Made by a program: the position numbers and the translations under genes. A stretch of 64,000 bases of DNA from the IMG/VR virus record IMGVR_UViG_3300044957_000763, positions 124,001-188,000 of that record. The stretch is one strand, 5' to 3'. A model generated the notes under the pieces. The model was not told where the DNA came from. It did no database searches and saw nothing but the letters and a program-made list of their open reading frames with translations. Shown piece after piece: positions 33,804-63,320 of this stretch. Within the stretch, counting starts at the first letter, position 1; each line of letters begins with the position of its first letter.

Positions 33804-33808
33804 AATTT

Positions 33809-35296: not shown

Positions 35297-35317
35297 CGAT
35301 TTCGGCTTCGGTCGAAA

Positions 35318-35547
35318 CTAGGGGTGTGTAAGTGAGATGCGAGCCAGGTGCACAATCAGTGTATGTCTGGGTTCACTTCGGTGAATAGAAAACAAGTAAC
35401 CACTTGAAATGGTGACTATTATGGCAAACTTGTTCCTGACTAGGACTTTGAATGTCAAGATGCAAGGTTCAATTTAGTCAAAATACAAGGCGCAAAACGC
35501 AAGTCTTAAGAATCAACATTCACTCGGTCTTACAAACCACCCCTTAG
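35318..35547 (+). ncRNA. Structured RNA with 7-nt-periodic CAA loop
   Basis: GGGGTG-TGTAAG/CTTACA-CACCCC closing helix, UUCG hairpin, AACAAGT/ACTTGTT helix, GAATGT/ACATTC closing a repeat loop. Confidence 0.7.
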
Positions 35548-35592
35548 TATTTTGTTGAAGGTCGATTTTACACTTGTGTCGAACTGTTAATT

Positions 35593-36327
35593 ATGAGTTC
35601 GAAATACACACATCGACACGATGAAATTGTTCACTTGTGTAAAAACGCATTTACATTTTCAGAAGTCGAGCAACAGCTTGGTACATCAACACCAAACACC
35701 TCGCTTCGGAGATATATTAAGTTTCATAGCATACCAATGCCAAATTATTGCAGAGTTCGCGACGTTGATGATAATTTAGTAAAATATTATCAACCTATAC
35801 GAATTGAAGATTTGATAAATGGCATACGATTGTCAACGCATGCTGTAAAGAAATTTCTTTTTAAGAACGGTATCAAATCTCAAGAGTGTGAGATTTGCGG
35901 TTGGTGTGAACGACGTGCATCAAATGGAAAAATTCCAGTACACTTACATCACATTAACGGGAACCCATTTGATTGGACGATTGAAAATTTGCAGATTTTG
36001 TGCCCTAATCATCATGCACTCACTGATAATTTTGGTTCTCTGAATACAGGAAAAGGTTACATATTTGCAAATCGCCCAGCTACAACCAGGGCCCGCTTAG
36101 AGCACGAAACTAGCAATGCTTGTTTGTATTGCGCTTCTGCTTGTTCTTATAAGTCTAAATTTTGTTCTAGAGAGTGTCTATATATGAGTCAGCAAAAATG
36201 CATTAGACCAACTAAGGAACAATTAAAAGATGAGATAGCTAATAGCAACTGGATGGCTATTGGTCGCAAATATGGAGTGTCAGACAATGCTGTAAGAAAA
36301 TGGGCCAAGAAATATGGCATAATATAA
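35593..36327 (+). CDS. HNH endonuclease with C-terminal HTH
   Basis: CEICG...LHHINGN..D...NLQILCPNHH; AIGRKYGVSDNAVRKW. Confidence 0.88.
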   Translation: MSSKYTHRHDEIVHLCKNAFTFSEVEQQLGTSTPNTSLRRYIKFHSIPMPNYCRVRDVDDNLVKYYQPIRIEDLINGIRLSTHAVKKFLFKNGIKSQECEICGWCERRASNGKIPVHLHHINGNPFDWTIENLQILCPNHHALTDNFGSLNTGKGYIFANRPATTRARLEHETSNACLYCASACSYKSKFCSRECLYMSQQKCIRPTKEQLKDEIANSNWMAIGRKYGVSDNAVRKWAKKYGII

Positions 36328-36329
36328 TT

Positions 36330-36411
36330 GCCCCGTGGTTTGACGCTTGAGGCTTGAGCGATTGGTCCCTAAAACCAACAACAAAGGGTTCAACTCCCTC
36401 TCGGGGCGCCA
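36330..36411 (+). tRNA. Second, non-canonical tRNA with CTA anticodon
   Basis: TTGGT-CC-CTA-AA-ACCAA (C33 instead of U33); 6-bp acceptor; 14-nt D-loop; GCCA end. Confidence 0.55.
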
Positions 36412-36465
36412 ATTCTCTCACAAACTACAAGGTTCATTGTCTTCTGCTGTGTAAAAAAGACATAG

Positions 36466-38544: not shown

Positions 38545-38577
38545 TTGTTGCTTGAATTAGCAACGGATTGACATGCA

Positions 38578-41500: not shown

Positions 41501-41646
41501 CACTTGGTGTTAAACCCGGTCCAGTGATTGGTCAAATACTCAACGAGGCATGGCAAATGCAGATTGTGGGCACGTTCACGAGTCGTGAGGATGCTCTTGC
41601 TTGGCTGTCGAATCGAGTGAATTCTGACGCCACGTTAACGCAGTAG
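38578..41646 (+). CDS. cca: CCA-adding tRNA nucleotidyltransferase with HD domain, intein and extra insertion
   Basis: VGGAVRD, DIDVE, RRDFTMN, EDPLRVLR, ERIAEEW, PQDPEWHPEG, VHDIAK. Confidence 0.9.
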   Translation: MWYRTIVAARNGVYVSELNLPINETLHAILEDLRSQGFKALVVGGAVRDAVMGVVPKDIDVEVYGADYDTLHTTLTKYGRADVVGKSFGVLKLRTPDGQDYDFSVPRRDSKTGDGHTGFKITVDHTMTPEQAAARRDFTMNCFSGETKILTKSGPKSLMELCGQQCEVLDGNGEWTHADVRSFGVQKLLKLTVTRNRIVKTIYATPNHRWFIKNKHTYVFDRERTTENLRCGHMLPSVYPIIQSTQLDNESICRGFVFGDGNIVVFDSGNAVSIANFCGEKDSHLLPLFEKLDMGRPPHDIPSGKRISSLPPNWKLETPEFSESYEYLLGWLSGYFAADGCVDSKGCPVLSSCNRENLEYVEQLCRCVGIGTYQISQCKIGSGYNSKSECWSLGFVRKTLFSDFFIIPEHRKRFNSATNSRNRTAWKVVSVDDSDRIEEVYCAVVPTTHTFCLDGNLLTSNCLAYDPLTSEIHDYYGGIEDLENGVLRATTEAFKEDPLRVLRGMQFAARYGMRLDPDTAKMCREIVDAHDELATERIAEEWMKLAIKGKQPGTALEYLADTGWLKHYPELEAMFDVPQDPEWHPEGWEHFDAPEHKRNLYTKEDQNVSHWQDVIGFRGDAPSGSKMVSTPYKSTNPERQHENSPEPHIYVTMDVPIDSYWRYVYEQDRIDAKPIANLAVRHLMSQYGGAELNGKTHYRMIGSLKASPAVYCHAERQGDHVELTVGLHSELSKELLDRGCPLHVYVKMGDVATHTAHVMDAAAAVAERDGLIGDDRATLVLAAMVHDIAKPQTTEIQQRAGRGMSVTSIGHEKAGEPIAVDLLKRMGIKKSIRDKVGPMVARHLAHVTTTPTKSNVRKLARDIAPASIEELAKLIEADHSGRPPLPQELPRQAQDMLDIARKDGVANGKPAPIVQGKHVLPYYGGASGKHIGEAVQEAYRAYLNGAYDNFEGGQQWLSNYLQSRASMLRGSDVIALGVKPGPVIGQILNEAWQMQIVGTFTSREDALAWLSNRVNSDATLTQ
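39001..39960 (+). mobile_element. Intein (320 aa) with LAGLIDADG homing endonuclease
   Basis: Begins CFSGET, block B TPNHRW, GFVFGDG and GYFAADG, ends VYCAVV...LLTSN; +1 residue Cys. Confidence 0.92.
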
Positions 41647-41845
41647 CGCCGGCCCAAATTACCTGCAAGACCACTACTGAATATAATTGGTGGAACCACG
41701 CGTCTACTGCAATCATTATTGGTCCAACAATGTTGCACATTTCATAAAATGTGCTTTCTTGTTTGATTTTTCCAGCACGCATGGCAACATAGCTACCGAC
41801 AACAATAAATATTCCTGCCCAACCAAGTACATCAAGTAAATTCAT
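41576..41845 (-). CDS. Small three-helix membrane protein (CBU_0592-like)
   Basis: LGWAG...SY...NIVG...LQVIW hydrophobic pattern. Confidence 0.6.
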   Translation of the reverse strand: MNLLDVLGWAGIFIVVGSYVAMRAGKIKQESTFYEMCNIVGPIMIAVDAWFHQLYSVVVLQVIWAGATALTWRQNSLDSTAKQEHPHDS

Positions 41846-41858
41846 CTATTTATTATGT

Positions 41859-42266
41859 CTATTTGAACTTGATTGATAAGTCAATGCGGCCGGCAACTCC
41901 ATCTTCTCGAGGTGTGCCGTTTACTGAAAACACAGACATGTTCAGATTGAAGTTTGGTCTTGAAAACTGGTATCCAAAACCGTATTTTGAAATCATATTT
42001 GCATTCAGTTCATGACCGCGTGAAAGGTCGTAGTTCATGTTAAGCCCAGGCAAAATACGTATGCCGGTGCCGGCACTGAATCCGCGTAAGTTCCAGTTGT
42101 TTTGTTCGCTAAGTCGAGTTGATGCACGGAGAGTAAACGCATCTTTATATGATGCGTTGTAGTTGATGTCCAGGGTGTTGTCCTTGAATCCTTGGGCCAT
42201 GATTGTACACGTAACGAGTGCTGTGATGATAGTCGCTATAAGTTTCATGTTATTTTTATACCGCAC
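41859..42266 (-). CDS. Secreted beta-rich protein
   Basis: Signal peptide; alternating beta pattern; C-terminal Phe/Lys. Confidence 0.5.
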   Translation of the reverse strand: MRYKNNMKLIATIITALVTCTIMAQGFKDNTLDINYNASYKDAFTLRASTRLSEQNNWNLRGFSAGTGIRILPGLNMNYDLSRGHELNANMISKYGFGYQFSRPNFNLNMSVFSVNGTPREDGVAGRIDLSIKFK

Positions 42267-42298
42267 GCATTGTTGGAATTCATGGTATAATCACGAAT

Positions 42299-42628
42299 GT
42301 GAGTCAAAAAAATAGAATCACTGACTTGGTTGGTACGTTGGATTTCTTTGATTTCGTAACACCGATTGAACCAGCACCGCCATCGCATGATGAGCTTGAG
42401 TCGATATCTAACAATATGGGCATTCAGTGCGCTGCTGCAGTAGTAGAAGACTACTTGTCTTTGTCTGCTAATAGATATGCCTCATGTGGAATTCGTGCCG
42501 GGTGTGTTCTGAAGCTAAAAGACGGTGGTTATCTACTTGTAGGCCACGTTAGCGAGCGCCTTGGCTACATAGATGACGCTCCATTCATAGAATTACACGA
42601 AATCGAGGCTATTGCCTATTTGTATTGA
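42299..42628 (+). CDS. Hypothetical protein
   Basis: ORF after a TGGTATAAT box. Confidence 0.55.
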   Translation: MSQKNRITDLVGTLDFFDFVTPIEPAPPSHDELESISNNMGIQCAAAVVEDYLSLSANRYASCGIRAGCVLKLKDGGYLLVGHVSERLGYIDDAPFIELHEIEAIAYLY

Positions 42629-42637
42629 GGTTACAAA

Positions 42638-42925
42638 ATGCCTGAAGATGTTCCTATTCCAAACTGCAATGATATTCTGGATATGATTATAGCAGTTACT
42701 GCCAAAAACGACACTGAAGCCAATCGTTATCATGATGGCGAAATGTCAAGCGAGTTATATTTGCAAACTTGCCTTGCGCACATGTCTGAGATTACATGGA
42801 TTGTAAGCTGTAATCATTTGTCATCTGGAGACATGAGGTTGATTGATTTTTGGACTCGGCACCGTAATTTTGCCAAATGGAACCTGGTTAAGCCTCGCCC
42901 TGATGGCTATGAATTTTTGGCTTGA
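42638..42925 (+). CDS. Hypothetical protein
   Basis: 95-aa ORF with GAGG SD. Confidence 0.55.
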   Translation: MPEDVPIPNCNDILDMIIAVTAKNDTEANRYHDGEMSSELYLQTCLAHMSEITWIVSCNHLSSGDMRLIDFWTRHRNFAKWNLVKPRPDGYEFLA

Positions 42926-43487
42926 ACTCAGACAAGCTGGCATTAGGATTGAATAGACCAATTTGTTGATTCCGCATGCTTACAATCGCTTGGGCTTTAT
43001 CAATGGTGGTCATCCAGTGGTATTCTGGCGACAAGAAACAACGTTCGACATCAGCGCGAATTCCAAGCCAAACACCAGGCTCTAAGATTTTGATTTGCCC
43101 CTCTTCTGCCATGATAACACATTTCGCCGCGGCAAATGCATCTTGTGCAATATGAGCAATCGACCTTGGGCCTGGGTCTACACCTGTGGTCATGAATTCG
43201 CTGTATCTATTTAGGTCTGATTTAGAACCAGGCTCGTCTTTCTCGCAACTTATCCAACCATGTTCAGTCCATACGACAAACCACCCTTTCTCTGCCGCCT
43301 CAAGTGAACCAGGCCAATAACCAGTCCAAGCCGCTTTGTCCCAATCATGCTCATCGCATTGGCACAACATATATTGCCCAAAGCACTTTGTGCAGATTTG
43401 AACATCACAGTCTTCTTGATGTCTTTCGCCAGGACTGACGCCGCAATCCGGGCATATTGTTTCAGCCCGTAAACCTTCCATACTCAT
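42888..43487 (-). CDS. Hypothetical Cys-rich protein
   Basis: CPDCG...H..DCD...CTKC N-terminal metal-binding pattern. Confidence 0.6.
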   Translation of the reverse strand: MSMEGLRAETICPDCGVSPGERHQEDCDVQICTKCFGQYMLCQCDEHDWDKAAWTGYWPGSLEAAEKGWFVVWTEHGWISCEKDEPGSKSDLNRYSEFMTTGVDPGPRSIAHIAQDAFAAAKCVIMAEEGQIKILEPGVWLGIRADVERCFLSPEYHWMTTIDKAQAIVSMRNQQIGLFNPNASLSEFKPKIHSHQGEA

Positions 43488-43802
43488 AATATACCACAAT
43501 GTGCCATAATAGGCGCAGGCCTGATGAACAAGCAATTTTACTAGTGTTTTGAACTTGTGTTGAGATTTTTCGAGAAAATTGACGCAGGTGGGAACATTTT
43601 CGACGCAGAATAGGTATAATACGACCAGCGGAGCAAATCTGCATCGAGATTAACATGAGCATTCGACTTAAGCGCAATAAACGCAACTACTAGGTATCCC
43701 AGTCTTTCGACAGGGGTGCCTTGCAGTCCTGTCGTTTATACCGAGTCGAATTATCTCCAATTCCCAACTCCATTCAGCGGCAGGAATGCGCATTCGCATT
43801 AT

Positions 43803-43879
43803 CCGTCGCTAGCTCAATGGTTAGTAGCAATTCCCTCTTAAGGAAAAGGTTCTGGGTTCAAGTCCCAGGCGACGGACCA
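43803..43879 (+). tRNA. tRNA-Lys(CTT)
   Basis: CCGTCGC/GCGACGG-ACCA; loop CT-CTT-AA. Confidence 0.88.
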
Positions 43880-43883
43880 ATAC

Positions 43884-43955
43884 CCCTCCGTGGCGCAAAG
43901 GCAGCGCAGGTGACTTTTAATTACTTGGTTACAGGTTCGAATCCTGTCGGGGGGA
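43884..43955 (+). tRNA. tRNA-Lys(TTT), no encoded CCA
   Basis: CCCTCCG/CGGGGGG-A; loop CT-TTT-AA. Confidence 0.85.
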
Positions 43956-43963
43956 CACAATTT

Positions 43964-44042
43964 GGCGGCTTAACTCAGTTGGGTCAAGAGTACTCGGCTT
44001 TTAACCGAGGGGTCGTGGGGTCCCAGTCCACAGTCGCCACCA
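43964..44042 (+). tRNA. tRNA-Lys(TTT), atypical T-loop
   Basis: GGCGGCT/AGTCGCC-ACCA; CTCGG-CTTTTAA-CCGAG; T-loop lacks TTC. Confidence 0.75.
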
Positions 44043-49756: not shown

Positions 49757-50751
49757 ACGACAAAATAGAATTCACATCATTGTTTTCTGGCTGCGGCGGA
49801 TTAGACTGCGGTATGCATATGGCCGGTCTAAAAACTGTCTATGCCAATGAGTATGACAAACGCATTACTCCTACTTATCGTAGAAACTTCCCCGATGTAG
49901 AGGTTTCCACCGGAGATATTCGGACCATCAGTTTTGCAGACTTACCAAATACTCGAGGCATTATTGGTTCTCCTCCGTGTCAATCATGGTCTGCCGCAGG
50001 CGCAGGCCGCGGCGCGATGGACCCTCGAGGAAAACTGTTCTACGTTTATTGTGATATTATTGCAGCTAAGAAACCTGAGTTTTTTGTTGCAGAAAATGTC
50101 TCAGGCATGTTGCAGGGCAAAAAAGTTGAGGCGTTTCAGTACTTGATTGGTCAGTTAAAGAGTTGTGGTTACCATGTTGCCTACAAGTTGGTTGATTGTG
50201 CAGACTATGGCGTGCCTCAAAATCGAGACCGAGTTTTCATTGTTGGGCTGCGCAATGACACTTATGATTCGGAGTTCGTCTTTCCTGAACCAACACACAT
50301 TGGGAATCATATGACTCTACAAGATGCTATTGGAGACCTCGGTGCACCACAAGAATTGAGTCAAAATCGCAACAACCAGTGGGATTCGTTTAATCACGAA
50401 TATTCATCAGGAACATGGTCGCCGCATTTTATGAGCAGGCAACGAGTGCGCTCGTGGAATGAATGTTCTTACACCATACCAGCTACCGGTCGTCATGTTC
50501 CGTTGCACCCAAGTGCCAATAAGATGATTCCAGCAGGTACAGATAAGTATGTGTTTGACCCAAATACCCCTTGCCCGTATCGTCGCCTTTCTGTTCGAGA
50601 ATGCGCTAGAATACAGACATTTCCAGACGATTTCGTGTTTGAATACGATGCGATTGATGCAGGGTACTTAATGGTTGGTAATGCCGTGCCTGTTGAAATG
50701 GCAAGGGTTATAGGAACAGCGCTTAAAGAACGTATTGAACTAGGCAAATGA
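49753..50751 (+). CDS. DNA (cytosine-5)-methyltransferase, M.HaeIII-like
   Basis: FSGCGG, PPCQ, ENV, QNRDRVF, RECARIQTFP, VGNAVP. Confidence 0.95.
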   Translation: MNDKIEFTSLFSGCGGLDCGMHMAGLKTVYANEYDKRITPTYRRNFPDVEVSTGDIRTISFADLPNTRGIIGSPPCQSWSAAGAGRGAMDPRGKLFYVYCDIIAAKKPEFFVAENVSGMLQGKKVEAFQYLIGQLKSCGYHVAYKLVDCADYGVPQNRDRVFIVGLRNDTYDSEFVFPEPTHIGNHMTLQDAIGDLGAPQELSQNRNNQWDSFNHEYSSGTWSPHFMSRQRVRSWNECSYTIPATGRHVPLHPSANKMIPAGTDKYVFDPNTPCPYRRLSVRECARIQTFPDDFVFEYDAIDAGYLMVGNAVPVEMARVIGTALKERIELGK

Positions 50752-52421
50752 AGTCACTGTCACTTTTCTCTGGTATTGGTGGCATTGAATTGGCACTGTC
50801 TCAAATTGGCATTGAGCCAGTTGCTTTTTGTGATTGGGAAAAGTACTGTCAGCAAATTTTGTCCCGCCACTGGGAAAGTGTTCCGGTGTTTGGCGATGTC
50901 AAAGAGCTTGATGTCGAGCAATTAAGGGCTTCTGGCGTATCTATAGATGACATCAAGATTATTACTGGCGGGTATCCTTGTCAAAGTCACTCTGTTGCCG
51001 GCAATCGCAAGGGTCGAGACGACGAGCGACATTTATGGCCAGAGATGTTCAGATTGATTCAATCAATCTCTCCAGATTACATCATCGGTGAGAATGTCGA
51101 AGGTTTACTGAGTAGTTCTGACGGTACTGTGTTTGGCGATGTGCTAAGAGATATGTCTTCGTTAGGATATCGCGTGGGATGGTGTTGTTATCCCGCCAGC
51201 GATATCGGATGCTCGCACGAAAGATATCGGGTGTTCTCATTTGGTTTGCGTGAAACACATTCTGGCTGGATGCCAGACAAAACCGTGGTGATGGACGCAA
51301 TTATGGCATGGCTGGCATATGCGAAGTGGCCAGCACTTCCTGGTTATAAGCAACGTGTTTATGAGCCACCACGCGTGATATTCGAAGACATTGACAAAGA
51401 CCGGTCAAAACGCGTAAAGGCAATTGGCAATGCTGTTTCACCAATGCAGATTTTTCCTATAGCATTGGCGTTAATGTGTCGCGGTGATATGGAATACATT
51501 GACTTTTCAGGTATTAAGCAAGATTGGTTAGAGGCTTGTGTTAATGTCAGAATGTTTGATAAGAAACTAGCAGTTCTTGAGGAATGTTTTCGACTTGTGA
51601 GAACAGTAATTGAGCAACCAATTGGTAAGACTTTTGCATATTTAGACAACGATGTGTGGCATTTAGGGACAAAGCCGTTTATTGGCAAACCTGGCCTTCA
51701 GGTGCCCAAGTGGAAAAAGTGGGGGTATATCTCACATGGCACTACTTGTATGGATTACAAGCACAATTTCAACACCACGACTTTGAGAGCACAATTCCCA
51801 CCATATCTCGGTGACAGACATCATGGTTCAGAACAATGGAGAGATATGGACGAAGCACTATGGCGCACTCCAACGTCTGAATGCGGCGTTAAGATTACCA
51901 GCTTAATGGACAAAGACGGTAATCCGCCGTCCAGGCTAGGTGTTACTACATATCGTCGCAACAAAGATGGCACTGTGGCAGTTCAGTCAGTCACACTCAA
52001 TCAGCAAGTTGCCATGTGCCACGAATGGGAGTCGGCACTTTGGGCCACTCCTCAGGCCAATACTACCACCGGAGAATTACCAGAGTATTTAGTGAATTCA
52101 AAGGGAGAGGAACCACAACCAGGCGAGAAAATGTATCGTCGTGATTCCGGTCGAATGGTTCAAACAGCACTTACTACACAAGTCAAGATGTGGCCTGGCG
52201 AGGCCGATGCGGCACCTTACTGTCCTATTAGTGTATTGTGGCCGAGACCCACTACGCATGAGTCGTCAGAAGTTATTGATTGTGTTTATAGTCCAAGCAA
52301 AACAAGTGACACTATAGAGCGCACCGCTCGTTCTGCCAGTGGCAAGCGTGCAATGATGAATCCTGATTGGGAAGAAGTACTTATGGGATTCCCAATTGGA
52401 TGGACTAAGTTAAACTTGTAA
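50748..52421 (+). CDS. DNA (cytosine-5)-methyltransferase with extended C-terminus
   Basis: FSGIGG, GYPCQ, ENV, RYRVF, IGNAV; three LWxTP-like repeats and NPDWEEVLMGFPIGWT. Confidence 0.88.
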   Translation: MKSLSLFSGIGGIELALSQIGIEPVAFCDWEKYCQQILSRHWESVPVFGDVKELDVEQLRASGVSIDDIKIITGGYPCQSHSVAGNRKGRDDERHLWPEMFRLIQSISPDYIIGENVEGLLSSSDGTVFGDVLRDMSSLGYRVGWCCYPASDIGCSHERYRVFSFGLRETHSGWMPDKTVVMDAIMAWLAYAKWPALPGYKQRVYEPPRVIFEDIDKDRSKRVKAIGNAVSPMQIFPIALALMCRGDMEYIDFSGIKQDWLEACVNVRMFDKKLAVLEECFRLVRTVIEQPIGKTFAYLDNDVWHLGTKPFIGKPGLQVPKWKKWGYISHGTTCMDYKHNFNTTTLRAQFPPYLGDRHHGSEQWRDMDEALWRTPTSECGVKITSLMDKDGNPPSRLGVTTYRRNKDGTVAVQSVTLNQQVAMCHEWESALWATPQANTTTGELPEYLVNSKGEEPQPGEKMYRRDSGRMVQTALTTQVKMWPGEADAAPYCPISVLWPRPTTHESSEVIDCVYSPSKTSDTIERTARSASGKRAMMNPDWEEVLMGFPIGWTKLNL

Positions 52422-54218: not shown

Positions 54219-54530
54219 ATGAGATTGGTGAAAGAAAACATTTTAACACCTGAGCAAATAGAGAAAATAACCGAGGCTTTCGTCCATGGTCGCGCTTCGC
54301 AGGGAGAACCTGCACCTACAGATTCAGAACTCGAGTCCATTCTGTGGTGGTTTAATGAAGTCGCTCGAGGCGCAGTACTAATGCAGTGGGTTTTAGACGG
54401 TTCAATTGCGTTGAATATGAATGATAATATCATAGTATTTATTGGTATGGAACAAGACGAAGACACACTATCACCTCTCATTATGAAGCAATTAGAGTCA
54501 CTTGATTTTGATGGAGAAAATCAGGTATAA
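54219..54530 (+). CDS. Hypothetical protein
   Basis: Likely start MRLVKENIL. Confidence 0.5.
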   Translation: MRLVKENILTPEQIEKITEAFVHGRASQGEPAPTDSELESILWWFNEVARGAVLMQWVLDGSIALNMNDNIIVFIGMEQDEDTLSPLIMKQLESLDFDGENQV

Positions 54531-54537
54531 GTCCAAT

Positions 54538-55047
54538 ATGGATGTTATTATTCGTGCAAAATCCGATGACCACTTGCCAGAAAAAACCAAACAGGTCATT
54601 GTTGTGCGCAAACTATACCCGGATGGTAAGGGTGGTCTGCGTAAAATCAGGTCTGGCAAAATAGCATCCCAAGCCGCGCACGCTAGTATGATTTGGTTAT
54701 CAAGGCGGGTTTGTGAGGCTGCATCACCGCCGCTTGAGCATATTGTTGGAAAGATGAGCGCATACCCAGGTGTTAAGTACACAAACAATTTTAACGACCT
54801 TGGGTTTACCACCGAAGAGCGCGATTGGCTAACTGGAAAATTCACCAAGATTGTGCTTGGAGTTGACACAGAAGAAGAACTGATTGCCTTGCATCAAAAA
54901 GCACTAGACGCCGGTCTTACATCTCATATTGTAACTGATTCTGGTCTTACAGAATTTGACGGAGAACCAACCAACACTGCGATTGCCATTGGCCCCCATA
55001 GTGCCAATAGAATTGAAGGATTAACCAAGGGGCTTAGTTTACTATGA
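54538..55047 (+). CDS. Peptidyl-tRNA hydrolase, Pth2 family
   Basis: KQVIVVRK...GKIASQAAHAS...KIVL...DSGLTEF...TAIAIGP. Confidence 0.9.
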   Translation: MDVIIRAKSDDHLPEKTKQVIVVRKLYPDGKGGLRKIRSGKIASQAAHASMIWLSRRVCEAASPPLEHIVGKMSAYPGVKYTNNFNDLGFTTEERDWLTGKFTKIVLGVDTEEELIALHQKALDAGLTSHIVTDSGLTEFDGEPTNTAIAIGPHSANRIEGLTKGLSLL

Positions 55048-55367: not shown

Positions 55368-55575
55368 TGACGCGAGCCAATTAGTTGGCATGTCTGTTGG
55401 CAACGGTAAGTCCGAACTTACAGAAGCCCAACTTCAAAGTATCGCAACCGGACTTGGATATCGCACTGCGCAAATCAGAGACACCTTTTCGATGTATGAT
55501 TGTATGTACGATACAAGCCGGCTGCAAATTCATGTAGACGAACAGAAAAAAATTACATCAGTCCGCGTCGGCTAA
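55345..55575 (+). CDS. Peptidase inhibitor I78-like small protein
   Basis: LVG...IR...DY/CMY...RLQIHVDE...ITSVRVG. Confidence 0.5.
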   Translation: MKTKVQINDASQLVGMSVGNGKSELTEAQLQSIATGLGYRTAQIRDTFSMYDCMYDTSRLQIHVDEQKKITSVRVG

Positions 55576-56254
55576 ATCCGATTTCGCCACCGAGGTATCG
55601 TGCCAATGACACTTTCTGTCCTGTGATTTCGCACTTGACTATGTTGTCTTGGCAACGGATTGTACGCACCTTGTCGCCGCGCATACCGCTACCGATTTGT
55701 TCTTTTCTATCTCGAGCACGTTCATTTGTACTCTTTTTTGTTTGATAGTCGAGAACCTTGGAGTACAGTAGTTCTAAAGCAAGCGCACGGTTTTGATGTT
55801 GGCTTCGCTCTGTGTCACATCTAATTTCCATACCCGTAGGCAGGTGCTTTGCTATGACACAGGTTTCTACCTTGTTCTTTCGTTGGCCGCCTGGCCCGGA
55901 ACCTTTGGTAAACCTGAGTTCTATGTCCTTTTCGTTGACAACAGCGTTGTTGACAGCAATTGGAAGAACTGCCACAGTGATTGAAGAAGAATGTACTCGC
56001 CCACGTTTTTCATTCGGCGGAATTCTCTGCCATCTGTGGCCACCGGGTTCTTTGGCAAACAGTTCTGCCGCATAATCGCCTTTGATTATCAGCGCACAGA
56101 ACCCATCACGTTCATCAATAAACTCTAGTCAGAGCTTATTGGCTTTGCAGGCACGTTCGTAGATTCCGGCCTGTTCTTTGACGAGCATTTTGGCGTCGTC
56201 ACCGCCTTCGCCAGAGCGAATTTCAACAAGGATTGAATTATTGTGATGTTTCAT
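55553..56254 (-). CDS. Minimal class I peptide chain release factor with in-frame UGA at codon 42
   Basis: AGAGG SD, MKHH...VEIRSGEGGDDA...KANKL*LEFIDERDG...GGHRWQRIPPNEKRGRVHSSSITVAV...GPGGQ; all one frame, 233 codons. Confidence 0.85.
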
Positions 56255-56444
56255 GATTTTCCTCTTGTATTGGCTGAAAATCGTCATACAAATTAATGGT
56301 ACTTCTCACCACAACTGTATCAGCGATTTCACTGCGGGCTAACGTGACCATTTCATGAGAACCATATGCGGCTCTCTGTGTGTGGACGAGTTGGTACTCT
56401 TCTCCACTGGTTTTGTGAATCCATTTATTACTTAATTTCCGCAT
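56238..56444 (-). CDS. Small hypothetical protein
   Basis: 68-aa ORF overlapping the release factor start. Confidence 0.5.
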   Translation of the reverse strand: MRKLSNKWIHKTSGEEYQLVHTQRAAYGSHEMVTLARSEIADTVVVRSTINLYDDFQPIQEENHETSQ

Positions 56445-57591: not shown

Positions 57592-57980
57592 AACGAGCAC
57601 AAATACGCAGAAATGCACCAGGAGTTGATGTTACTGTAATGTCATCTAAAGACCGCGCCAGGTCTTTGGCACCAACATGGGAACTGGTAATGGGTCACAA
57701 GAATAGAACCATCAGCGATGACGAATATGCCTACGCATATGGTGCGTTGCTCAATTTGGTAAGCGCAGATGATTGGAACTGGTTGCAAGAGCAAAAGGAC
57801 ACCAATCATGAAGTTTATTTGTTGTGTTACTGCAGAGATGGTAAATTCTGCCATACTCATTTAATAGGTTTGTATGCGCAGGCACTTTTGCCAGAAGTAT
57901 TTGAATGTCAAACATCTCCTCCAAAATCTGTCATTGAAACTGCTTGGTACTTAGAACTTGCGGCCGGAGGCAAAAAATAA
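57579..57980 (+). CDS. DUF488-like protein
   Basis: LAPTWEL...Y...LLCYC....FCH. Confidence 0.55.
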   Translation: MVALKRAQIRRNAPGVDVTVMSSKDRARSLAPTWELVMGHKNRTISDDEYAYAYGALLNLVSADDWNWLQEQKDTNHEVYLLCYCRDGKFCHTHLIGLYAQALLPEVFECQTSPPKSVIETAWYLELAAGGKK

Positions 57981-57994
57981 GGTACAATAACACC

Positions 57995-58276
57995 ATGTCG
58001 TCTATTACATTACCGAATCCGGTTGACTCGAATGAAGATTGTCAGTCTGATGAGTACTGTATCATTGTCTACAACAATGATGTCAATACATTTCAGGAAG
58101 TTATCGCGATTTTGTGTATCGCATTGGAAATCGACAACCATCGTGCGGAATTGCACGCATGGGATGTACATTTGCTGGGTTCGGCTAGGGTACACTATGG
58201 TTCAGAAGCCGACTGTCAATCGAAGGCCGAGATAATTAGCAAAATCGGTATTCGTACAGAAGTTTGCTCTGCATAA
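57995..58276 (+). CDS. clpS: ClpS N-degron adaptor
   Basis: IIVYNNDVNTFQEVIAIL...AWDVHLLG.A. Confidence 0.85.
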   Translation: MSSITLPNPVDSNEDCQSDEYCIIVYNNDVNTFQEVIAILCIALEIDNHRAELHAWDVHLLGSARVHYGSEADCQSKAEIISKIGIRTEVCSA

Positions 58277-58294: not shown

Positions 58295-60814
58295 ATGTGG
58301 CAAAGATTTACAGAAAGCGCAAGAAAAGCTGTTTTTTATGCTCAAGAAGAAGCTCAAAACTACGCCGAAGGCTATGTCTCGACAGAGCACATTCTTCTTG
58401 GACTTATTCGAGAACCAGACAACGTATCGTGTGAAATCATTGAAAAAATGAATGTCAAATGCTCGAAGGTTAAATCCGAACTTGAAAAGGCGATGCCCAA
58501 GGGTGACGGTAGAGCAAATACTGATTTGTCTTTAACACCAAGGGCAAAACGTGCAATTGACCTTGCTTATGATGAAGCCCGCCAGCTTAACAATAACTAC
58601 ATCGGAACAGAGCACTTGTTGCTTGGATTATTGCGCGAATCTGATGGTCTCGCCGGTAGAACCCTTACTAAGTTCGGTATTACGTTGGAAAAAGCCAGGA
58701 CATTGGTTTTACAACAGCAAGAACACGAGGACGTTGATTCCGAACATTCTGATGCTATGTCATCGCCAGAGCGTTCTTCTAAGGTTAAAACTGCAAGTCT
58801 AGATGAATATAGCCGAGATTTGACTGCAATGGCGAAGGCAGGCAAGCTAGACCCTGTAATTGGTCGAGAACCAGAAGTCGAGCGTCTGATGCATATTCTA
58901 AGCCGTCGAACCAAGAACAATCCATGTCTTGTTGGTGACCCAGGAGTTGGAAAGACCGCTATTGTTGAAGGACTTGCGCAAAAGATTGTGAGTGGTAATG
59001 TGCCAAGGTCACTACGTGACAAGCGTGTGGTTTCGTTAGACTTGGCCGCGATGATTGCTGGTTCAAAATATCGCGGTGAATTCGAGGAACGATTGAAGCG
59101 AGTTATGGAAGAATTGCGCCGTGCACAAGGGCAGATTGTCCTGTTTATTGATGAATTGCACACATTGATTGGTGCCGGCGCCGCCGAAGGTGCAGTAGAT
59201 GCAAGCAATATCATGAAGCCAGCCTTGTCTCGTGGAGAGATGCAGTGTATCGGCGCAACAACGCATGACGAGTATCGTAAGTACATTGAAAAAGATGCTG
59301 CACTTGAGCGCAGATTTCAGGCAGTCAAGGTGCAAGAACCCAGTCCTGAAATTGCATATGAAATTCTTCGTGGATTGCGAGACCGATATGAGGCATATCA
59401 TGGCGTTGAATTGACCGATGAGTCACTTCGTGCCGCCGTTGATATGTCTGTTAGGTATATTACAGACAGAACTTTGCCAGATAAGGCAATTGACCTTATT
59501 GACGAGGCAAGTGCAAAGGTGCGACTACAGCATTCAATGCCAAACAACGAGTTGCAATCTCTGAAAAATCAAAGCGTTGAACTGGAAAGAGAGATTGGTA
59601 GATTAAAGAGGCAAAAGAAAACGAATGAACTTGAGAGTGCAGAAAGCAGATTCAAAGACATGTCTTCTGAAATCAGCAAACTAGAAAATGCATTGAGTCA
59701 TTCAGACGATGTTGATTTGATTATTGGCGAATCTGAAATCGCAGCGATTGTGCAATCATGGACTGGTATTCCTGTCAACAAGGTTGCACAAGATGAGTCT
59801 GCTCGTTTGTTAAACATGGAGGCAGACCTTATGCAACATATCATTGGTCAAGACGAAGCTGTTATTGCATTGTCTAAGACCATTAGAAGGTCGCGAAGTG
59901 GATTAGCAGACCCCAAGAGGCCGATGGGTAGTTTCATCTTCCTTGGACCAACTGGTGTCGGAAAAACCGAAACTGCCAAAGAGTTGACTCGATATTTATA
60001 TGGCAAAGACGATGCCATTGTTCGAATTGATATGTCTGAATACATGGAGAAGTTCTCTGTATCTAGACTTATTGGCGCACCTCCTGGTTATGTTGGATAT
60101 GACGAGGGTGGTCAGCTTACTGAGCAAGTGCGTCGGAATCCATACTGCGTTGTGCTTCTGGATGAAATCGAAAAAGCACACCCAGAAGTTTTCAATATCT
60201 TGCTACAGGTCATGGAAGACGGACATCTTACAGACTCTCGGGGTCGCAAGGTTGATTTCCGCAATACACTTATCATCATGACATCTAACGTTGGTGTCAA
60301 GCCAATTGAAGTAGACAAGGCACTTGGTTTCAGGACAATTACTGATGACCCTGATGACCCCAAGGTGTATCAGCGCCTCAAAAAGAACATGTTGGCCGAA
60401 ATGAAAAAAATGTTTCGTCCTGAGTTCCTGAACCGAGTTGATGAAATCATTGTTTTTCAGCATTTGAACCGAGCACATATTCTACAAATCGCAGACCTGT
60501 ATATGGCCCGAGTTTACAATCAGGCATCAGAACTTGGCATTGAACTTGTGTTAACTGAAAAACTTAAGGATGTATTGGTCAAAGAAGGGTATGACCCGAA
60601 TATGGGCGCAAGACCATTGCGACGAGCAGTTCAATCATTGGTTGAAAACCCATTGAGTGAAGAAATGCTTAAGGGCGCTCTCGAGTCTGGTAAGAAGTAT
60701 TTGATTGATTGCGACGACGAAAGTAACGTATCAATAAGTGAATATATTGAAGAAGTACCAGCGGAAATGCCTAAAAAGCGACAGAAGAAAACCGCAGAGG
60801 TTACAACTGAGTAA
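58295..60814 (+). CDS. clpC: ATP-dependent Clp protease ATPase ClpC
   Basis: Double Clp-N repeats, [16 protein letters not shown] coiled coil, [24 protein letters not shown]. Confidence 0.96.
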
Positions 60815-61034: not shown

Positions 61035-61724
61035 TTAGACATTGCGACCCAGGGTATAACTTGCGTATCGTTTTGGTTCATGAGTACAAACACCCTTGAA
61101 TCCAATTTCAAATGCAGTCTTAATAAATTCGTCTGTAAGGTCAAAGGCTCTTTCTTGTAATTCTTTTGCAAACAAAGTTGTCTCATTTGAAATTGATTGA
61201 TATTTATGAAGCTCTGGAGACACTACGTATGAATCTTTGGCAATATCTGCAAATTGCACCAGGTCATCGGGTGAGAACACATAGTCGAGCCAATATTCTT
61301 CTTGTGGTTTTGGATTCGTTACAGGCCCAGGCATAGACGCAACACTAATATTCTCAAACTTGCTTCGCCTTGTGAGCACTCTTCCTCCAGCAGCGCGGGT
61401 AAATATTTGGTCTGGAACAATCATGTCGACAAATGCATATTGGTTAAATATATATTGGCCATACGCAAACACAAGACTGTTCAATCGTTTGAACAATCCA
61501 GTTTCTTTGCAATCAAGTACTATTGTGTTGTTCCAATTTTGTGTTGCTTCATACATCGAAGCAAATGAAGGCGTGTACTCTGTAAAATAGTCACCTTCAA
61601 TTACATCGTGAGACAAATACACTATTCCTCGATGTGTTCTAAGGTCTACCTCAATACCCCATCCATTTTCAGCGGCCCATAACCATTGTTTAACACTGTT
61701 AGCTCTATGCAAAATAATTTCCAT
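61035..61724 (-). CDS. Glycerophosphodiester phosphodiesterase-like (PLC-like TIM barrel)
   Basis: IILHRAN...GIEVDLR...LSHD; VSPELH; GVCT. Confidence 0.7.
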   Translation of the reverse strand: MEIILHRANSVKQWLWAAENGWGIEVDLRTHRGIVYLSHDVIEGDYFTEYTPSFASMYEATQNWNNTIVLDCKETGLFKRLNSLVFAYGQYIFNQYAFVDMIVPDQIFTRAAGGRVLTRRSKFENISVASMPGPVTNPKPQEEYWLDYVFSPDDLVQFADIAKDSYVVSPELHKYQSISNETTLFAKELQERAFDLTDEFIKTAFEIGFKGVCTHEPKRYASYTLGRNV

Positions 61725-61727
61725 AAT

Positions 61728-63320
61728 TCATCCTATTAATCCAAGTTGTTTGTATTGTTCAATATTTTCAATAACACAATCTGGTAGTAATCCAGGTGTT
61801 ACTGGTTTAGTTTCAAATATGAAGCCGCGACCAAATACATCAGATTTGAGTTCTAATACCCGATTGGGTATTTGAGATAGAACTTCATCGTTATTGTATT
61901 CTGTGTGGCTGAATGCTTGAATCTTCTCTGTTATTATGTCGATTCCTCCCATAAAACTAAAATGCCAGCCGCCATTTCCTGGGAATTTGTATAGACCATT
62001 ATGCGCATCGCGCAGTTCTTGTGGTCTACGTTGCGACAGATGGTGTTTGAGCGCAATGACAAACATGTTCCACGGTGCGTGTGGCTCAATTCCAGGTTCT
62101 TGTCCAACCATAAAGTTGTTGAGTTTATAGTAGCACTTCTCGAGAGTGATTGTAGCCGGCGCATTATTATCAGACACCCATGCACATACTTTTTTGAGCA
62201 ATTCTATGTCTGGTATTTCGTCTACGTCTGAAATCAGTACAATATCTCCGATTTTTGCATGCTGTAGTCCAAGTTCTATGTTGTTTCTTTGCGCAGATTC
62301 ATTCCACCATGCGTTGTCTGGTTTTGGTTGAAAATCTGTTAGTACATGCTCGATTTTATCAGTCGCCCATTCGAATCTTTGCTTGTTTTCTAGATAGAAC
62401 AGTGGTTTGGGCTTACCAGTAAACGTGTACGGCGATTCTACTATAACAAACTTGTCTACGTGGTCATACATATGTCGAAGACGAAGTTCTAAAAGGTCCA
62501 ATTCGCGCCAGAACATGAAGCAGTCAAATATCTTCTTCGGTTCTCTTCTGTCAATGGGATGAAATAGATGCGGGTGTGTTTTTCGAGCATGAAACATGAC
62601 GGCAGGCAACTCAAGGTCGTCTACTGGTGACAATTGAATACCGTCAAGAAATATTCTGTCTTCAACAATGTCGCGCCAAAGCCTTGCTTCGTCATGAAAT
62701 TCTGGTATGTCAAACTCTGAGTGACTGAAGCTGGATAGCTTTCTTTGAATCCCTTCAATTCCACCAGTGTATGAGAAATGCCAACCTGCATCAGCAATCG
62801 GTGTGTATTTTCCAGATGTGCGTTGTTGGCGAATGTCTTGGGCATGTAGTCCTTTTTGATATGATACGATACTAGTGCCATGCCAAGCAAATGAATTAGT
62901 ATATCGGTCAAGATAGTAACAATGCGGTCGCATTAAGCACACATAGTTTTGTTTAGATTCAATTGCTGACTCAACGACATCTATAGCAGGAAATTCATCT
63001 ACGTCACCTAGTATTATTGTGTCGCCTTCTTTAGCGTCCTTGATTCCGTTGAATATAAAGTTGCGTTGCCTGGTTTCGTTATGCCATCTTTCGTGTGGTT
63101 TTACATTTGATACTAACGTATCACAAATAACGTGTCTGATTTTACTCATTGCCCAGCCAAATCTACCTGAATTTTTGGCAAAAACAAGTTCTTTTTGATT
63201 GCCGGCAAATGTTAGCGGTGCTTCGCATATTACAAATGCGTCGACTAAGTCCCATAAGTGTCTTAGTCGAAACTCCAGTAAGTCTATTTCGTCAGCGAAT
63301 GTAAAACAATCAAATACCAT
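61728..63320 (-). CDS. Tandem two-domain GT17-family glycosyltransferase
   Basis: Two copies of DCF.F..E.DLLE.RL...E..QRN...DVDE.P...GWHFS. Confidence 0.85.
   Translation of the reverse strand: MVFDCFTFADEIDLLEFRLRHLWDLVDAFVICEAPLTFAGNQKELVFAKNSGRFGWAMSKIRHVICDTLVSNVKPHERWHNETRQRNFIFNGIKDAKEGDTIILGDVDEFPAIDVVESAIESKQNYVCLMRPHCYYLDRYTNSFAWHGTSIVSYQKGLHAQDIRQQRTSGKYTPIADAGWHFSYTGGIEGIQRKLSSFSHSEFDIPEFHDEARLWRDIVEDRIFLDGIQLSPVDDLELPAVMFHARKTHPHLFHPIDRREPKKIFDCFMFWRELDLLELRLRHMYDHVDKFVIVESPYTFTGKPKPLFYLENKQRFEWATDKIEHVLTDFQPKPDNAWWNESAQRNNIELGLQHAKIGDIVLISDVDEIPDIELLKKVCAWVSDNNAPATITLEKCYYKLNNFMVGQEPGIEPHAPWNMFVIALKHHLSQRRPQELRDAHNGLYKFPGNGGWHFSFMGGIDIITEKIQAFSHTEYNNDEVLSQIPNRVLELKSDVFGRGFIFETKPVTPGLLPDCVIENIEQYKQLGLIG

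Follow-up and report, generated by a model that had tools for sequence, protein, structure and literature searches.

A domain 1-less RF1-like release factor gene of a huge phage is interrupted by a conserved in-frame UGA codon

The release factor locus

The window, i.e., the whole 64-kb stretch of DNA analyzed here, derives from a 478,840-bp huge-phage contig (IMGVR_UViG_3300044957_000763). On its minus strand, a Shine-Dalgarno (SD)-like element and an ATG open 41 codons, which are followed by a TGA codon and then by 191 codons in the same frame (Table 1). The N terminus reads MKHHNNSILVEIRSGEGGDDA, and the frame continues after the stop through GGHRWQRIPPNEKRGRVH to the GGQ motif. The +1 frame reads GAC TAG immediately after the stop, and +1 frameshifting therefore cannot work here. 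The list of open reading frames (ORFs) contained only the 140-amino-acid (aa) GTG ORF and a 52-aa ORF ending at the TGA. All of the sequence-level statements of the original prediction, namely, a phage release factor gene with an SD, an ATG, an in-frame TGA at codon 42, a PPN loop, and no domain 1, were confirmed. GAGG of the SD-like element is conserved in all relatives. The overlap of the upstream co-oriented ORF with the start of the release factor gene suggests translational coupling, and a counterpart of 65 to 80 aa is called upstream of the release factor gene in the syntenic relatives.

Table 1. Features at the release factor locus and the tRNA(CUA) gene (window coordinates)
Feature	Coordinates	Strand	Description
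Upstream ORF	56238..56444	-	68 aa; its end overlaps the release factor start by 17 nt; no known family
SD-like element	56261..56265	-	AGAGG, 6 nt upstream of the ATG
Start codon	56254-56252	-	ATG
ORF part 1	56132..56254	-	41 codons, MKHHNNSILVEIRSGEGGDDAKMLVKEQAGIYERACKANKL; strand 1 and codon-reading helix of release factor domain 2
Helix tip motif	56212-56192	-	GEGGDDA
Zone of excess nucleotide-level (synonymous) conservation	56123..56218	-	Codons ~13 to 44, around and upstream of the stop
Predicted hairpin	56116..56141	-	11 bp, CAAUAAGCUCU-GACU-AGAGUUUAUUG, with the UGA at the apical loop
Recoding context	56123..56137	-	AAG CTC TGA CTA GAG
In-frame TGA	56129..56131	-	Codon 42; recoding site
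ORF part 2	55553..56128	-	191 codons plus TAA; rest of domain 2/4 and the GGQ domain 3
Decoding loop tripeptide	56020-56012	-	PPN, in GGHRWQR-IPPN-EKRGRVHSS
GPGGQ	55894-55883	-	GGQ at 55891-55883
Terminator	55555-55553	-	TAA
Listed GTG ORF	55553-55975	-	140 aa
tRNA(CUA)	33728-33803		Suppressor tRNA

Both pieces belong to one RF1-like class I release factor

Profile searches placed both pieces in the class I peptide chain release factor superfamily. The RF-1 domain (PF00472) scored 88.7 bits (cutoff, 35). Pfam PCRF matched both pieces collinearly, with profile positions 97 to 133 before the stop (21.7 bits) and 154 to 194 after it (32.7 bits; cutoff, 24), and ORF part 1 also matched NCBIfam prfA positions 102 to 137 and aligned to E. 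coli RF1 (LEVRAGTGGDEA...). The continuity of the frame is thus more than chance. The best match in the PDB was Thermotoga maritima RF1 (T. maritima; E = 7e-31). A structural model of P0047, an uninterrupted homologue, superposed on ribosome-bound RF1 with a TMq of 0.93 to 0.94 and a root mean square deviation of 1.4 to 1.6 A; in this family model, ORF part 1 corresponds to E2-9 plus H12-31, i.e., a strand and a helix inside one beta-sheet domain. The model is of P0047 and not of the window's own protein.

RF1 (prfA) is the best match by sequence and by fold, and the protein shares with it the GGQ motif, the GxxD/E helix tip, the Q of HRxQR, and the position of the P-x-T loop. However, the scores were below the RF1 cutoffs (NF001859, 148.8 against 400; TIGR00019, 145.9 against 423), and the match started at profile position ~102, so domain 1 is absent; the C-terminal helix is also missing. 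The P-x-T tripeptide is lacking: the window has PPN and its clade has PPN, PDN, or PQN, aligned to PVT of T. maritima RF1, whereas most of the wider family has PPT. HTS reads HSS in this clade. The protein does not qualify as RF2 (prfB) either, as TIGR00020 scored 102.8 against 370 and the SPF tripeptide is absent. PrfH (RFH), the partner of RtcB2, is also a class I paralogue lacking domain 1, but the match was weak (TIGR03072, 78.2 against 166.65; TMq, 0.65), and the decoding loop here stays RF1-like, whereas that of PrfH is divergent. The neighboring genes are unknowns, PTH2, DUF488, ClpS, and ClpB, with no RtcB. ArfB has a GGQ domain plus a C-terminal tail only; NF006718 scored 37.2 against 100 on the GGQ segment alone, and a decoding domain is present here.

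The in-frame UGA is conserved and under selection

Whether homologues keep the stop at the aligned codon had been put forward as a test of the original prediction, with a sense codon in close homologues counting against it. All 14 relatives from independent assemblies, samples, and collections (L001 to L011, L018, L177, and L098), at 66% to 90% identity, keep TGA at this codon in the context Leu-TGA-CTA-GA(G/A). CTC-TGA-CTA-GAG is invariant in the close clade, and TGA-CTA-GA persists in L098, at 66% identity, while the 5' codon changes from CTC to CTG. A metagenome scan added only one more close relative, L177. Synonymous divergence is near saturation (dS up to more than 1), whereas dN/dS is 0.03 to 0.14 before the stop, between the stop and the first canonical internal start (GTG at codon 95), and after it (values of 0 to 0.13 were obtained for ORF part 1). 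These results rule out a sequencing error, a recent nonsense mutation, or a pseudogene, for which there was no evidence beyond the bare presence of a stop. Selenocysteine is ruled out likewise: no SECIS or other known recoding RNA was found in Rfam searches either at the gathering score or at E <= 5, and the aligned residue in homologues is Asp, Arg, or Glu, never Cys.

The other condition named in advance as fatal to the prediction was a start at an internal codon downstream of the stop. A split gene or termination-reinitiation, in which the 41-aa peptide and a separately initiated C-terminal protein assemble or act separately, could be considered because gene callers annotate downstream ORFs of 134 to 156 aa, because L098 has an in-frame TTG before GGHRWQ, and because in another in-frame lineage (L066) an ATG directly follows the stop (TAT TAG ATG), allowing reinitiation there. 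However, in the window clade no ATG, GTG, or TTG occurs between codons 43 and 95 (the L098 TTG is CTG there), yet the 52 codons 43 to 94, which include the GGHRWQR-PxN decoding loop, have a dN/dS of 0.03 to 0.14. In addition, register is kept across the stop in every lineage, which reinitiation would not require, and ORF part 1 forms part of a single domain. We consider this explanation very unlikely.

TGA is an ordinary terminator elsewhere in the window

Stop-to-stop ORF statistics were uninformative about a genome-wide change of the code. A gene map, however, showed that TGA, TAG, and TAA are all used as terminators: TGA ends 9 of 48 confident genes in the window (21 of 74 in a wider set), and no other gene in the window has a homology-backed in-frame TGA. 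Genome-wide reassignment of TGA (code 4/25) is therefore not supported in the window.

A dedicated suppressor tRNA or a late code change, supplied by the phage or its host, would make codon 42 a sense codon at the stage when the factor is needed, following the model for stop codon-recoded phages. Huge and gut phages with suppressor tRNAs and release factors in "code-change modules" have been described (bioRxiv 10.1101/2021.08.26.457843), and the window carries a tRNA(CUA) suppressor even though TAG terminates 12 of 48 confident genes, so this phage does tamper with stop decoding. However, no tRNA(UCA) was found among the 26 tRNAs in the window; the remaining 415 kb of the genome was not searched, and a tRNA(UCA) there cannot be excluded. 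Moreover, the same single TGA is kept in all relatives and independent lineages derived it from a frameshift site, which points to a site-specific signal, and bacterial (Myxococcota) members with the standard code carry the homologous TGA sensor. We regard this alternative as unlikely, although it is the strongest of those considered.

Relatives carry an RF2-type +1 frameshift site at the same codon

The gene belongs to a large family of domain 1-less RF1-like factors in huge phages and Myxococcota, with chromosomal homologues in the myxobacteria Archangium gephyra and Minicystis rosea. When annotated phage genomes were examined, only unannotated metagenomic huge phages carried the family, and literature searches revealed no description of the family or of frameshifting or readthrough in it. 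Of 186 distinct family junctions, 168 have an RF2-type cassette for +1 frameshifting at the homologous codon (CTT_TGA, 127; CTT_TAG, 38; CTT_TAA, 3). An SD-like element is present in 129 of the 168, and the position is fixed in 162 of the 168. The TGA of the window aligns with the Asp (GAC) produced after the +1 shift in these relatives and with R35 of P0047. In the window itself the cassette, defined by a slippery CUU, a stop, an SD-like element ~3 nt upstream, and a downstream ORF in the +1 frame, is absent, as the sequence reads AAT AAG CTC TGA and the downstream frame is 0. The phylogenetic tree requires three independent origins of in-frame stops, each sister to a frameshifter with strong support. 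All in-frame TGA lineages read TGA-CTN, and none keeps CTT.

We looked for a link between the decoding loop (PPT, PPN, SPT; H/Q-T-S) and the stop used at the recoding site and found none: PPT and PPN both occur with TGA and with TAG sites, so PPN is not special to the in-frame clade. The family also flips between TGA and TAG among close relatives (L030/L039 and L073/L086), which blurs what is being sensed.

Stop hopping, in which peptidyl-tRNA-Leu would leave CUC, skip UGA, and re-pair at CUA to give a product two residues shorter, was considered because Leu codons flank the stop in the window clade, L098, and L093, and because a hairpin containing the take-off codon and the stop loosely recalls T4 gene 60. 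However, the flanking codons are not matched (CUC/CUA and CUG/CUA), the 5' codon varies while the 3' codon is fixed, and three other in-frame members, L083 (GGC_TGA_CTC), L091 (AGC_TGA_CTT), and L193 (TAT_TGA_CTG), have no possible landing codon. Leu-X-Leu is simply inherited from the Leu-Asp-Leu of frameshifting relatives. Hopping thus appears highly improbable.

Nucleotide-level constraint and a predicted hairpin around the stop

A local peak of synonymous constraint is centered on the site. The 100-nt bin 56100-56199 is the most conserved in ~6 kb of synteny, and because the peak is confined to this one bin, recombination was rejected as the cause of the low dS. In the zone of excess conservation, 7 of 13 eligible columns are codon invariant against 2 of 66 downstream (Fisher P = 1.8e-5), one of these 9 invariant columns among 79 being Leu43 CTA. 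Synonymous diversity is 0.11 to 0.24 against 0.4 to 0.6.

RNAalifold and RNAfold predicted a hairpin with the stop in its loop, which is clear in the window clade and supported by one compensatory U-A to C-G change. However, it is absent in L098 and inconsistent in other in-frame lineages, and local folding energies are not exceptional (z from -0.4 to -2.8). It is therefore not the common determinant, and its role is unexplained. Neither the hairpin nor the strong upstream constraint is accounted for by a simple readthrough model based on context only.

The position of the UGA in the apical loop also raised the possibility of an RNA-level change, such as A-to-I editing of UGA to UGG, as stops in hairpins are edited in other systems. 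Contigs assembled from four wastewater metatranscriptome libraries span the site in close relatives and show no change at 56129-56131 among the higher-ranked differences, to which the comparison was limited. This test is weak, because these are contigs of relatives, contigs hide minority variants, and DNA carryover is possible. The loop does not fit the TadA motif, and the hairpin is absent in L098; editing is very doubtful.

Proposed readthrough and its regulatory logic

We propose that the gene encodes a functional RF1-type class I release factor without domain 1, which predicts independence from RF3, and that its only full-length product requires in-frame decoding of UGA at codon 42. The most likely mechanism, held with moderate confidence, is programmed stop codon readthrough. 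In this view, the ribosome reaches Leu(CUC)-UGA-CUA-G, a poor RF2 signal, as UGA-C is the same tetranucleotide as in the prfB frameshift site, where it is a weak stop (PMC12421855). UGA_CUAG is a readthrough-prone signal in mammals (PMC9841425). Host RF2 would compete there with a near-cognate tRNA, most likely tRNA-Trp. The window encodes a tRNA-Trp(CCA) with a U11-A24 D-stem pair, the position of the Hirsh UGA suppressor change. Termination would yield a 41-aa dead-end peptide and readthrough the 233-aa factor. The site descends from an RF2-style cassette (SD-like element, CUU-UGA-C), in which loss of one nucleotide after TGA put the downstream frame in register, the slippery CUU and the SD being lost afterwards. 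The logic of a termination efficiency sensor would thus be retained, with output rising when termination at UGA is slow.

The conservation of the site, the selection acting on it, its homology to the frameshift sites, and its independent origins are shown by the sequence comparisons, whereas the readthrough itself, its decoder, its efficiency, and the sensor function are inferred. A conserved in-frame stop with homology and purifying selection continuing in the same frame is present as expected for readthrough, but there is no direct evidence of a readthrough product, and residue 42 of a full-length protein was not examined. Basal UGA readthrough in bacteria is usually low, a few percent or less, and the output would then be far below that of the frameshifting relatives.

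The interpretation given in the original prediction, an autoregulated factor made only when UGA termination is weak and probably recognizing UGA or acting in ribosome rescue, is thus supported only in part. The conserved, selected UGA that must be decoded in frame, the identity as a class I factor lacking domain 1, and the inability to use a +1 shift all hold, and the link to RF2-type regulation is stronger than proposed, since sister lineages carry a true CTT-TGA-C cassette at the homologous codon. Recognition of UGA by the factor is unresolved and not supported, as the protein is RF1-like in sequence and fold, so that a UGA sensor is not obviously self-regulating; with TAG used at 38 of 168 frameshift sites in the family, recognition by the factor of its own sensor codon is unproven. 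A role in ribosome rescue is only suggested by neighbors (PTH2 and tmRNA), without an RtcB or PrfH signature.

A more far-reaching reading is possible but tentative. The gene could be one tip of an undescribed, widespread third kind of bacterial-type class I release factor, RF1-like, lacking domain 1, and therefore predicted to be RF3 independent, whose synthesis is gated by a termination efficiency sensor, usually a CUU-UGA/UAG +1 frameshift that was repeatedly converted into in-frame UGA readthrough. In the strongest version, the factor itself would act on the sensor codon as an omnipotent or backup terminator that autoregulates like RF2, and the phage's own A24 tRNA-Trp would be the dedicated decoder, as proposed for Mimivirus.

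Recoding in release factor genes is the textbook case of translational autoregulation and in bacteria has been tied to RF2 and to +1 frameshifting. Here, the same cassette sits in a different factor family, which appears to have switched at least three times from frameshifting to in-frame UGA readthrough and often from UGA to UAG. This provides a natural series for asking what a termination sensor needs, how interchangeable frameshifting and readthrough are, and why huge phages and myxobacteria keep an extra, predicted RF3-independent terminator. It also means that gene callers systematically misannotate this family, as NCBI and JGI call only the downstream ORF.

Comparison with known recoded genes

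The closest precedents are prfB and the Mimivirus release factor gene. As in prfB, a class I release factor gene is interrupted early (codon 26 in E. coli and codon 42 here) by a UGA followed by C, and termination competes with recoding; most relatives of the gene carry literally the same cassette (cGGAGGggt CTT TGA C). However, in the window the downstream frame is 0 and not +1, CUU is replaced by CUC, the SD-like element is gone, and the protein is RF1-like. The site lies in domain 2, because domain 1 does not exist, so the cassette is not positionally homologous to that of prfB. The family also uses TAG, which prfB never does (PMC12421855), and in the literature found, recoding in prfA is not known (PMC12421855).

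The Mimivirus R726 and Megavirus mg280 genes encode class I release factors whose synthesis needs readthrough of a conserved UGA-C plus a CUU-UAG/UAA-C shift, and the readthrough was detected in E. coli (PMC3521657). There, as here, CUU-UAG/UAA-C shifty stops occur in the same gene or family, the virus encodes a tRNA-Trp with a Hirsh-like adenine in the D arm, and an autoregulatory reading has been proposed. Those proteins are eRF1-type factors of eukaryotic giant viruses and need both events in one gene, whereas the bacteriophage RF1-type factor uses either a frameshift or a readthrough, the latter untested, depending on the lineage.

The phage Qbeta A1 protein and eukaryotic or viral UGA-CUAG readthrough also involve near-cognate decoding of UGA in a leaky 3' context, but those cases make a minor C-terminally extended isoform, whereas here readthrough is needed for the only functional product. 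The CUAG effect has not been shown in bacteria and may here partly reflect descent from T-GAC-CTN, although the UGA CUA G hexa/heptamer is identical to the mammalian readthrough-prone signal.

Gene structure and sequence similarity

An AGAGG Shine-Dalgarno sequence precedes the ATG of the release factor (RF) gene, and the 41 sense codons that follow (MKHHNNSILVEIRSGEGGDDAKMLVKEQAGIYERACKANKL) lead to an in-frame TGA, after which a further 191 codons run in the same frame to a TAA. Coordinates are compiled in the table below. The mechanical ORF list contained only a 140-aa ORF starting with GTG and a 52-aa ORF ending at the TGA, and the +1 frame reads GAC TAG immediately. The Pfam PCRF model matched the translated sequence both before the stop (profile positions 97 to 133) and after it (154 to 194) in register, and the RF-1 model scored 88.7 bits. 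Among the NCBIfam models, RF1 (148.8 bits) ranked above RF2 (102.8 bits), PrfH (78.2 bits), and ArfB (37.2 bits), but all of these scores are far below the respective cut-offs, and the match starts at about position 102 of RF1, so that domain 1 is missing. Sequence searches against the PDB were in agreement, with Thermotoga maritima RF1 at 7e-31, RF2 at around 2e-20, and PrfH at 6e-12; PPN aligns with PVT, and HSS aligns with HTS. Every factual statement of the original prediction that a phage release factor gene is interrupted by an in-frame UGA was confirmed.

Coordinates of the features discussed in the text
Feature	Sequence	Positions	Strand
Shine-Dalgarno sequence AGAGG	window	56265-56261	-
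ATG start codon of the RF gene	window	56254	-
In-frame TGA	window	56131-56129	-
TAA terminator of the RF gene	window	55555-55553	-
Excess synonymous conservation upstream of the stop and 11-bp hairpin with the UGA in its loop	window	56116-56218	-
PTH2	window	54502-55047	
ClpS	window	57944-58276	
ClpB	window	58295-60814	
tmRNA (tag ANNNFALAV)	window	20131-20485	+
Arrays of 26 tRNA genes	window	24520-44041	
tRNA-Trp(CCA)	window	24520-24593	+
Suppressor-type tRNA(CUA)	window	33728-33803	+
Adjacent gene pair, same frame, separated by TGA at 42626-42628	window	42299-42925	+
Adjacent gene pair, same frame, separated by TGA at 61728-61730	window	61035-63320	-
557-aa protein with cytosine-C5 DNA methyltransferase-like N-terminal motifs	window	50748-52421	+
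2056-aa ORF at the left end	window	24-6194	+
RF, two small ORFs, and PTH2 block of L098	JAFDWS010000002.1	478356-481307	
TAT TAG ATG junction	L066	~1500	

Genomic context and stop codon usage

The window (positions ~124,001 to 188,000 of a 478,840-bp IMG/VR viral contig) carries 26 tRNA genes, including one tRNA-Trp(CCA) and one amber-suppressor-type tRNA(CUA), which ARAGORN calls "Pyl," as well as a tmRNA. The RF gene is the last of three co-oriented genes, and the 68-aa ORF upstream overlaps its start by 17 nt. A PTH2 peptidyl-tRNA hydrolase, DUF488, ClpS, and ClpB are encoded within 3 kb. Together with the tmRNA and the tRNA arrays, PTH2, ClpS, and ClpB form a translation and protein-quality toolkit near the RF gene. 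The 557-aa protein (motifs FSGIGG...PCQ) and the 2056-aa ORF listed in the table were not analyzed.

All three stop codons terminate genes here: among 48 confident genes, the counts are 27 for TAA, 12 for TAG, and 9 for TGA. No other gene showed a homology-backed in-frame stop, and TGA is therefore not reassigned, at least in these 64 kb. Two pairs of adjacent genes lie in the same frame and are separated by a single TGA, with good coding scores on both sides; homology across these stops was not checked, but they are probably just neighboring genes, since an ATG follows within 3 to 9 nt. The use of TAG as a terminator despite the presence of the tRNA(CUA) suggests stage-specific or partial amber suppression elsewhere in the genome.

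Conservation of the in-frame stop

A sense codon at this position in close homologues, together with a sequencing error or a recent nonsense mutation, had been named in advance as an outcome that would overturn the original prediction. A protein search identified four closest clusters (79% to 86% identity), all of which had been called as truncated proteins of 134 to 156 aa. The corresponding DNA comes from eleven contigs of different samples, syntenic with the window, and shows the same structure every time: an ATG, 40 to 41 codons, TGA, and then the rest in frame. Later searches added three more sequences: (i) L018, which is the window's own contig; (ii) L177, at 85% identity; and (iii) L098, at 66% identity, located on a 1.36-Mb contig of an Armatimonadota metagenome-assembled genome and syntenic over the RF gene, two small ORFs, and PTH2. 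The occurrence of this block with its in-frame TGA in L098 could reflect a prophage or related element, a binning artifact, or a hint to the host.

The context CTC-TGA-CTA-GAG is invariant in the close clade, while nearby synonymous sites vary, and L098 has CTG-TGA-CTA-GAA. Nei-Gojobori dN/dS values were 0.03 to 0.14 in each of three segments, namely, the 41 codons before the stop, the 52 codons between the stop and the first canonical internal start (GTG, codon 95), and the remainder, whereas dS reaches saturation between lineages. Sequencing error, recent nonsense mutation, and pseudogene status are thus excluded, and all three segments are translated in this frame.

A family of RF1-like factors with a homologous frameshift site

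More distant hits (~45% to 58% identity) form a coherent family with the loop GGHRWQR-(V/I)-PP-(T/N)-EKRGR-V-(H/Q)-TS, no domain 1, and a short C terminus. Many of these had been called as proteins of ~195 aa that begin right at the stop position of the window. Their DNA explains why: an upstream ORF of 36 to 39 aa (M..IVEIRAAEGGDDAK...RRGL) ends in "...cGGAGGggt CTT TGA C," and the main ORF continues in the +1 frame. This is the prfB cassette, consisting of an SD-like element, slippery CUU, and UGA-C. The shifted product reads Leu-Asp-Leu-Glu where the window reads Leu-stop-Leu-Glu.

The family was surveyed in three collections: (i) IMG/VR yielded 330 relatives, mostly on contigs of 50 to 620 kb; (ii) representative genomes yielded 175 relatives, dominated by Myxococcota and including the complete genomes of Archangium gephyra (NZ_CP102578) and Minicystis rosea (CP016211); and (iii) metagenomes yielded 43 relatives. 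Together, these gave 186 distinct junctions. The +1 cassette, with its junction ~32 codons after the VEIR motif, was recorded for the set L012, L013, L017, L019 to L096, L097 to L176, and L178 to L209 (our numbering of the relatives), and it occurs in huge phages and in Myxococcota.

Types of junction among the 186 distinct junctions of the family
Junction type	Count
+1 CTT_TGA	127
+1 CTT_TAG	38
+1 CTT_TAA	3
In-frame stop	13
Uninterrupted	4
Unclear	1

An SD-like element precedes 129 of the 168 shift sites, and the site is at a fixed distance in 162 of 168. Protein databases also hold many uninterrupted members of ~222 aa. NCBI names only the truncated downstream ORFs of Minicystis ("peptide chain release factor 1" or "-like protein"), so the shift is not annotated. 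Public annotation truncates the genes of this family that carry the cassette. We found no paper describing it, and huge-phage papers mention release factors only generically. A 2025 survey states that prfA shows no programmed frameshift and that prfB never uses TAG (PMC12421855), in contrast to the TAG-containing sites of this family.

Repeated origin of in-frame stops

A maximum-likelihood tree of 79 distinct products requires three origins of the in-frame state, which are forced by well-supported branches: (i) the window clade, sister to the frameshifter L017 (98/92); (ii) L083 plus L091, sister to the frameshifter L087 (100/99), a subfamily in which the site lies ten codons further on; and (iii) L093 (CTA_TGA_CTG) plus L066 (TAT_TAG_ATG) (100/100). 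L193 (TAT_TGA_CTG) carries the same kind of site as the last pair and resembles them there, but it is not in the tree. This last clade switches between TGA and TAG, and because an ATG follows the stop directly in L066, termination-reinitiation or amber suppression may operate there instead of UGA readthrough.

In each case, the stop takes the place of the Asp codon that overlaps TGA in the cassette. Loss of one nucleotide from TGA-C-CTN would give TGA-CTN in frame, which is an inference but fits all lineages. None of the in-frame lineages keeps the slippery CTT, and the window clade also lacks the SD-like element, as expected once a +1 slip has become unproductive. Every in-frame TGA is followed by CTN.

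Proposed decoding of the UGA codon

Frameshifting in the window is excluded by the frame and by the immediate +1 stop. Hopping from CUC to CUA is unlikely, since the flanking codons are not matched and the 5' codon varies (CUC or CUG) while the 3' codon is fixed, since three other in-frame lineages have no landing codon, and since Leu-X-Leu is inherited from Leu-Asp-Leu. Initiation at an internal GTG or ATG downstream of the stop had also been specified beforehand as a result that would refute the prediction. Reinitiation is unlikely in this clade, as there is no canonical start for 52 codons that are under strong selection and contain the decoding loop, and the register is always kept. In addition, the N-terminal piece is a strand plus the codon-reading helix of one domain. 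The AlphaFold model of P0047, an uninterrupted homologue (pLDDT 86), shows a strand at residues 2 to 9 and a helix at residues 12 to 31, with the site at the helix-to-strand junction, and superposes on ribosome-bound RF1 with a TMq of 0.93 to 0.94.

Selenocysteine has no support, since no SECIS element was found and homologues have Asp, Arg, or Glu at that position. RNA editing was tested only weakly: contigs from four wastewater metatranscriptomes cover the site in close relatives, with no listed change. What remains is in-frame decoding of UGA by a tRNA, of which near-cognate readthrough is the simplest form. UGA-C is the weak stop of the prfB site (PMC12421855), UGA-CUA-G is the best-known leaky context in mammals, and the UGA-C of the Mimivirus factor is read through even in Escherichia coli. 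A dedicated tRNA(UCA) encoded in the 415 kb that were not seen cannot be excluded. The tRNA-Trp of the phage, a candidate decoder of the UGA, has A24 paired with U11 in the D stem, the position changed in the Hirsh UGA suppressor, as well as a U13:U22 mismatch. The A24 feature is a lead and not a test; the Mimivirus authors noted the same for their viral tRNA-Trp.

We have high confidence that in-frame recoding of the UGA is required, whereas our confidence in the full explanation, which combines near-cognate readthrough with a retained termination-sensor role, is moderate. The interpretation given in the original prediction is partly supported, and it is strengthened on its central point, namely, that this is a regulated recoding site akin to that of RF2. 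Recoding-gated release factor genes are already known, with prfB as the precedent in bacteria and the Mimivirus factor as the precedent among viruses. The present gene differs from prfB in that its stop lies in frame with the downstream sequence, and it sits within a family whose frameshift site appears to be unannotated and undescribed.

Nucleotide-level conservation around the stop

Synonymous variation is suppressed over codons ~1 to 64 (0.11 to 0.24, against 0.4 to 0.6 downstream). The 100-nt bin holding the stop is the most conserved in ~6 kb of synteny in three comparisons (0.99, 0.94, and 0.88), with ordinary divergence on both sides, and this is therefore not a recombination tract. Across six sequences including L098, 7 of the 9 codon-invariant four-or-more-fold columns lie in codons 13 to 43 (Fisher P = 1.8e-5), whereas frameshifting sister pairs show only a mild effect (0.39 against 0.53). 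An 11-bp hairpin places the UGA in its apical loop and has one compensatory change, but it is missing in L098 and is not general. Neither the conservation nor the hairpin is explained by any known element, as the Rfam search was empty and no overlapping ORF was seen. The signal could be a readthrough stimulator, a binding site, or programming of decoding speed, among which our data do not discriminate, but something at the nucleotide level accompanies the in-frame site in this clade.

Predicted function of the factor and the signal that is sensed

Domain 1 is dispensable for codon recognition and hydrolysis but is needed for the interplay with RF3 (PMC1586002), and the factor is therefore most likely a stop-codon-dependent, RF3-independent peptide-release factor. 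The sequence does not reveal its specificity: the helix tip (GGDDA), the Q of HRWQR, and the His are RF1-like, but the clade has Asn for the Thr of PxT and Ser for the Thr of HTS. PPT and PPN, as well as H/Q-T-S, occur with both TGA and TAG sensors, and close relatives flip between TGA and TAG (the pairs L030/L039 and L073/L086). There are then three options: (i) the sensor reports on host RF2 or RF1 (cross-regulation); (ii) the factor reads more than RF1 does (autoregulation); or (iii) the stop merely provides a slow A site. The proposal that the factor recognizes UGA is therefore possible but not supported, and the proposed role in ribosome rescue rests only on the neighborhood (PTH2 and tmRNA).
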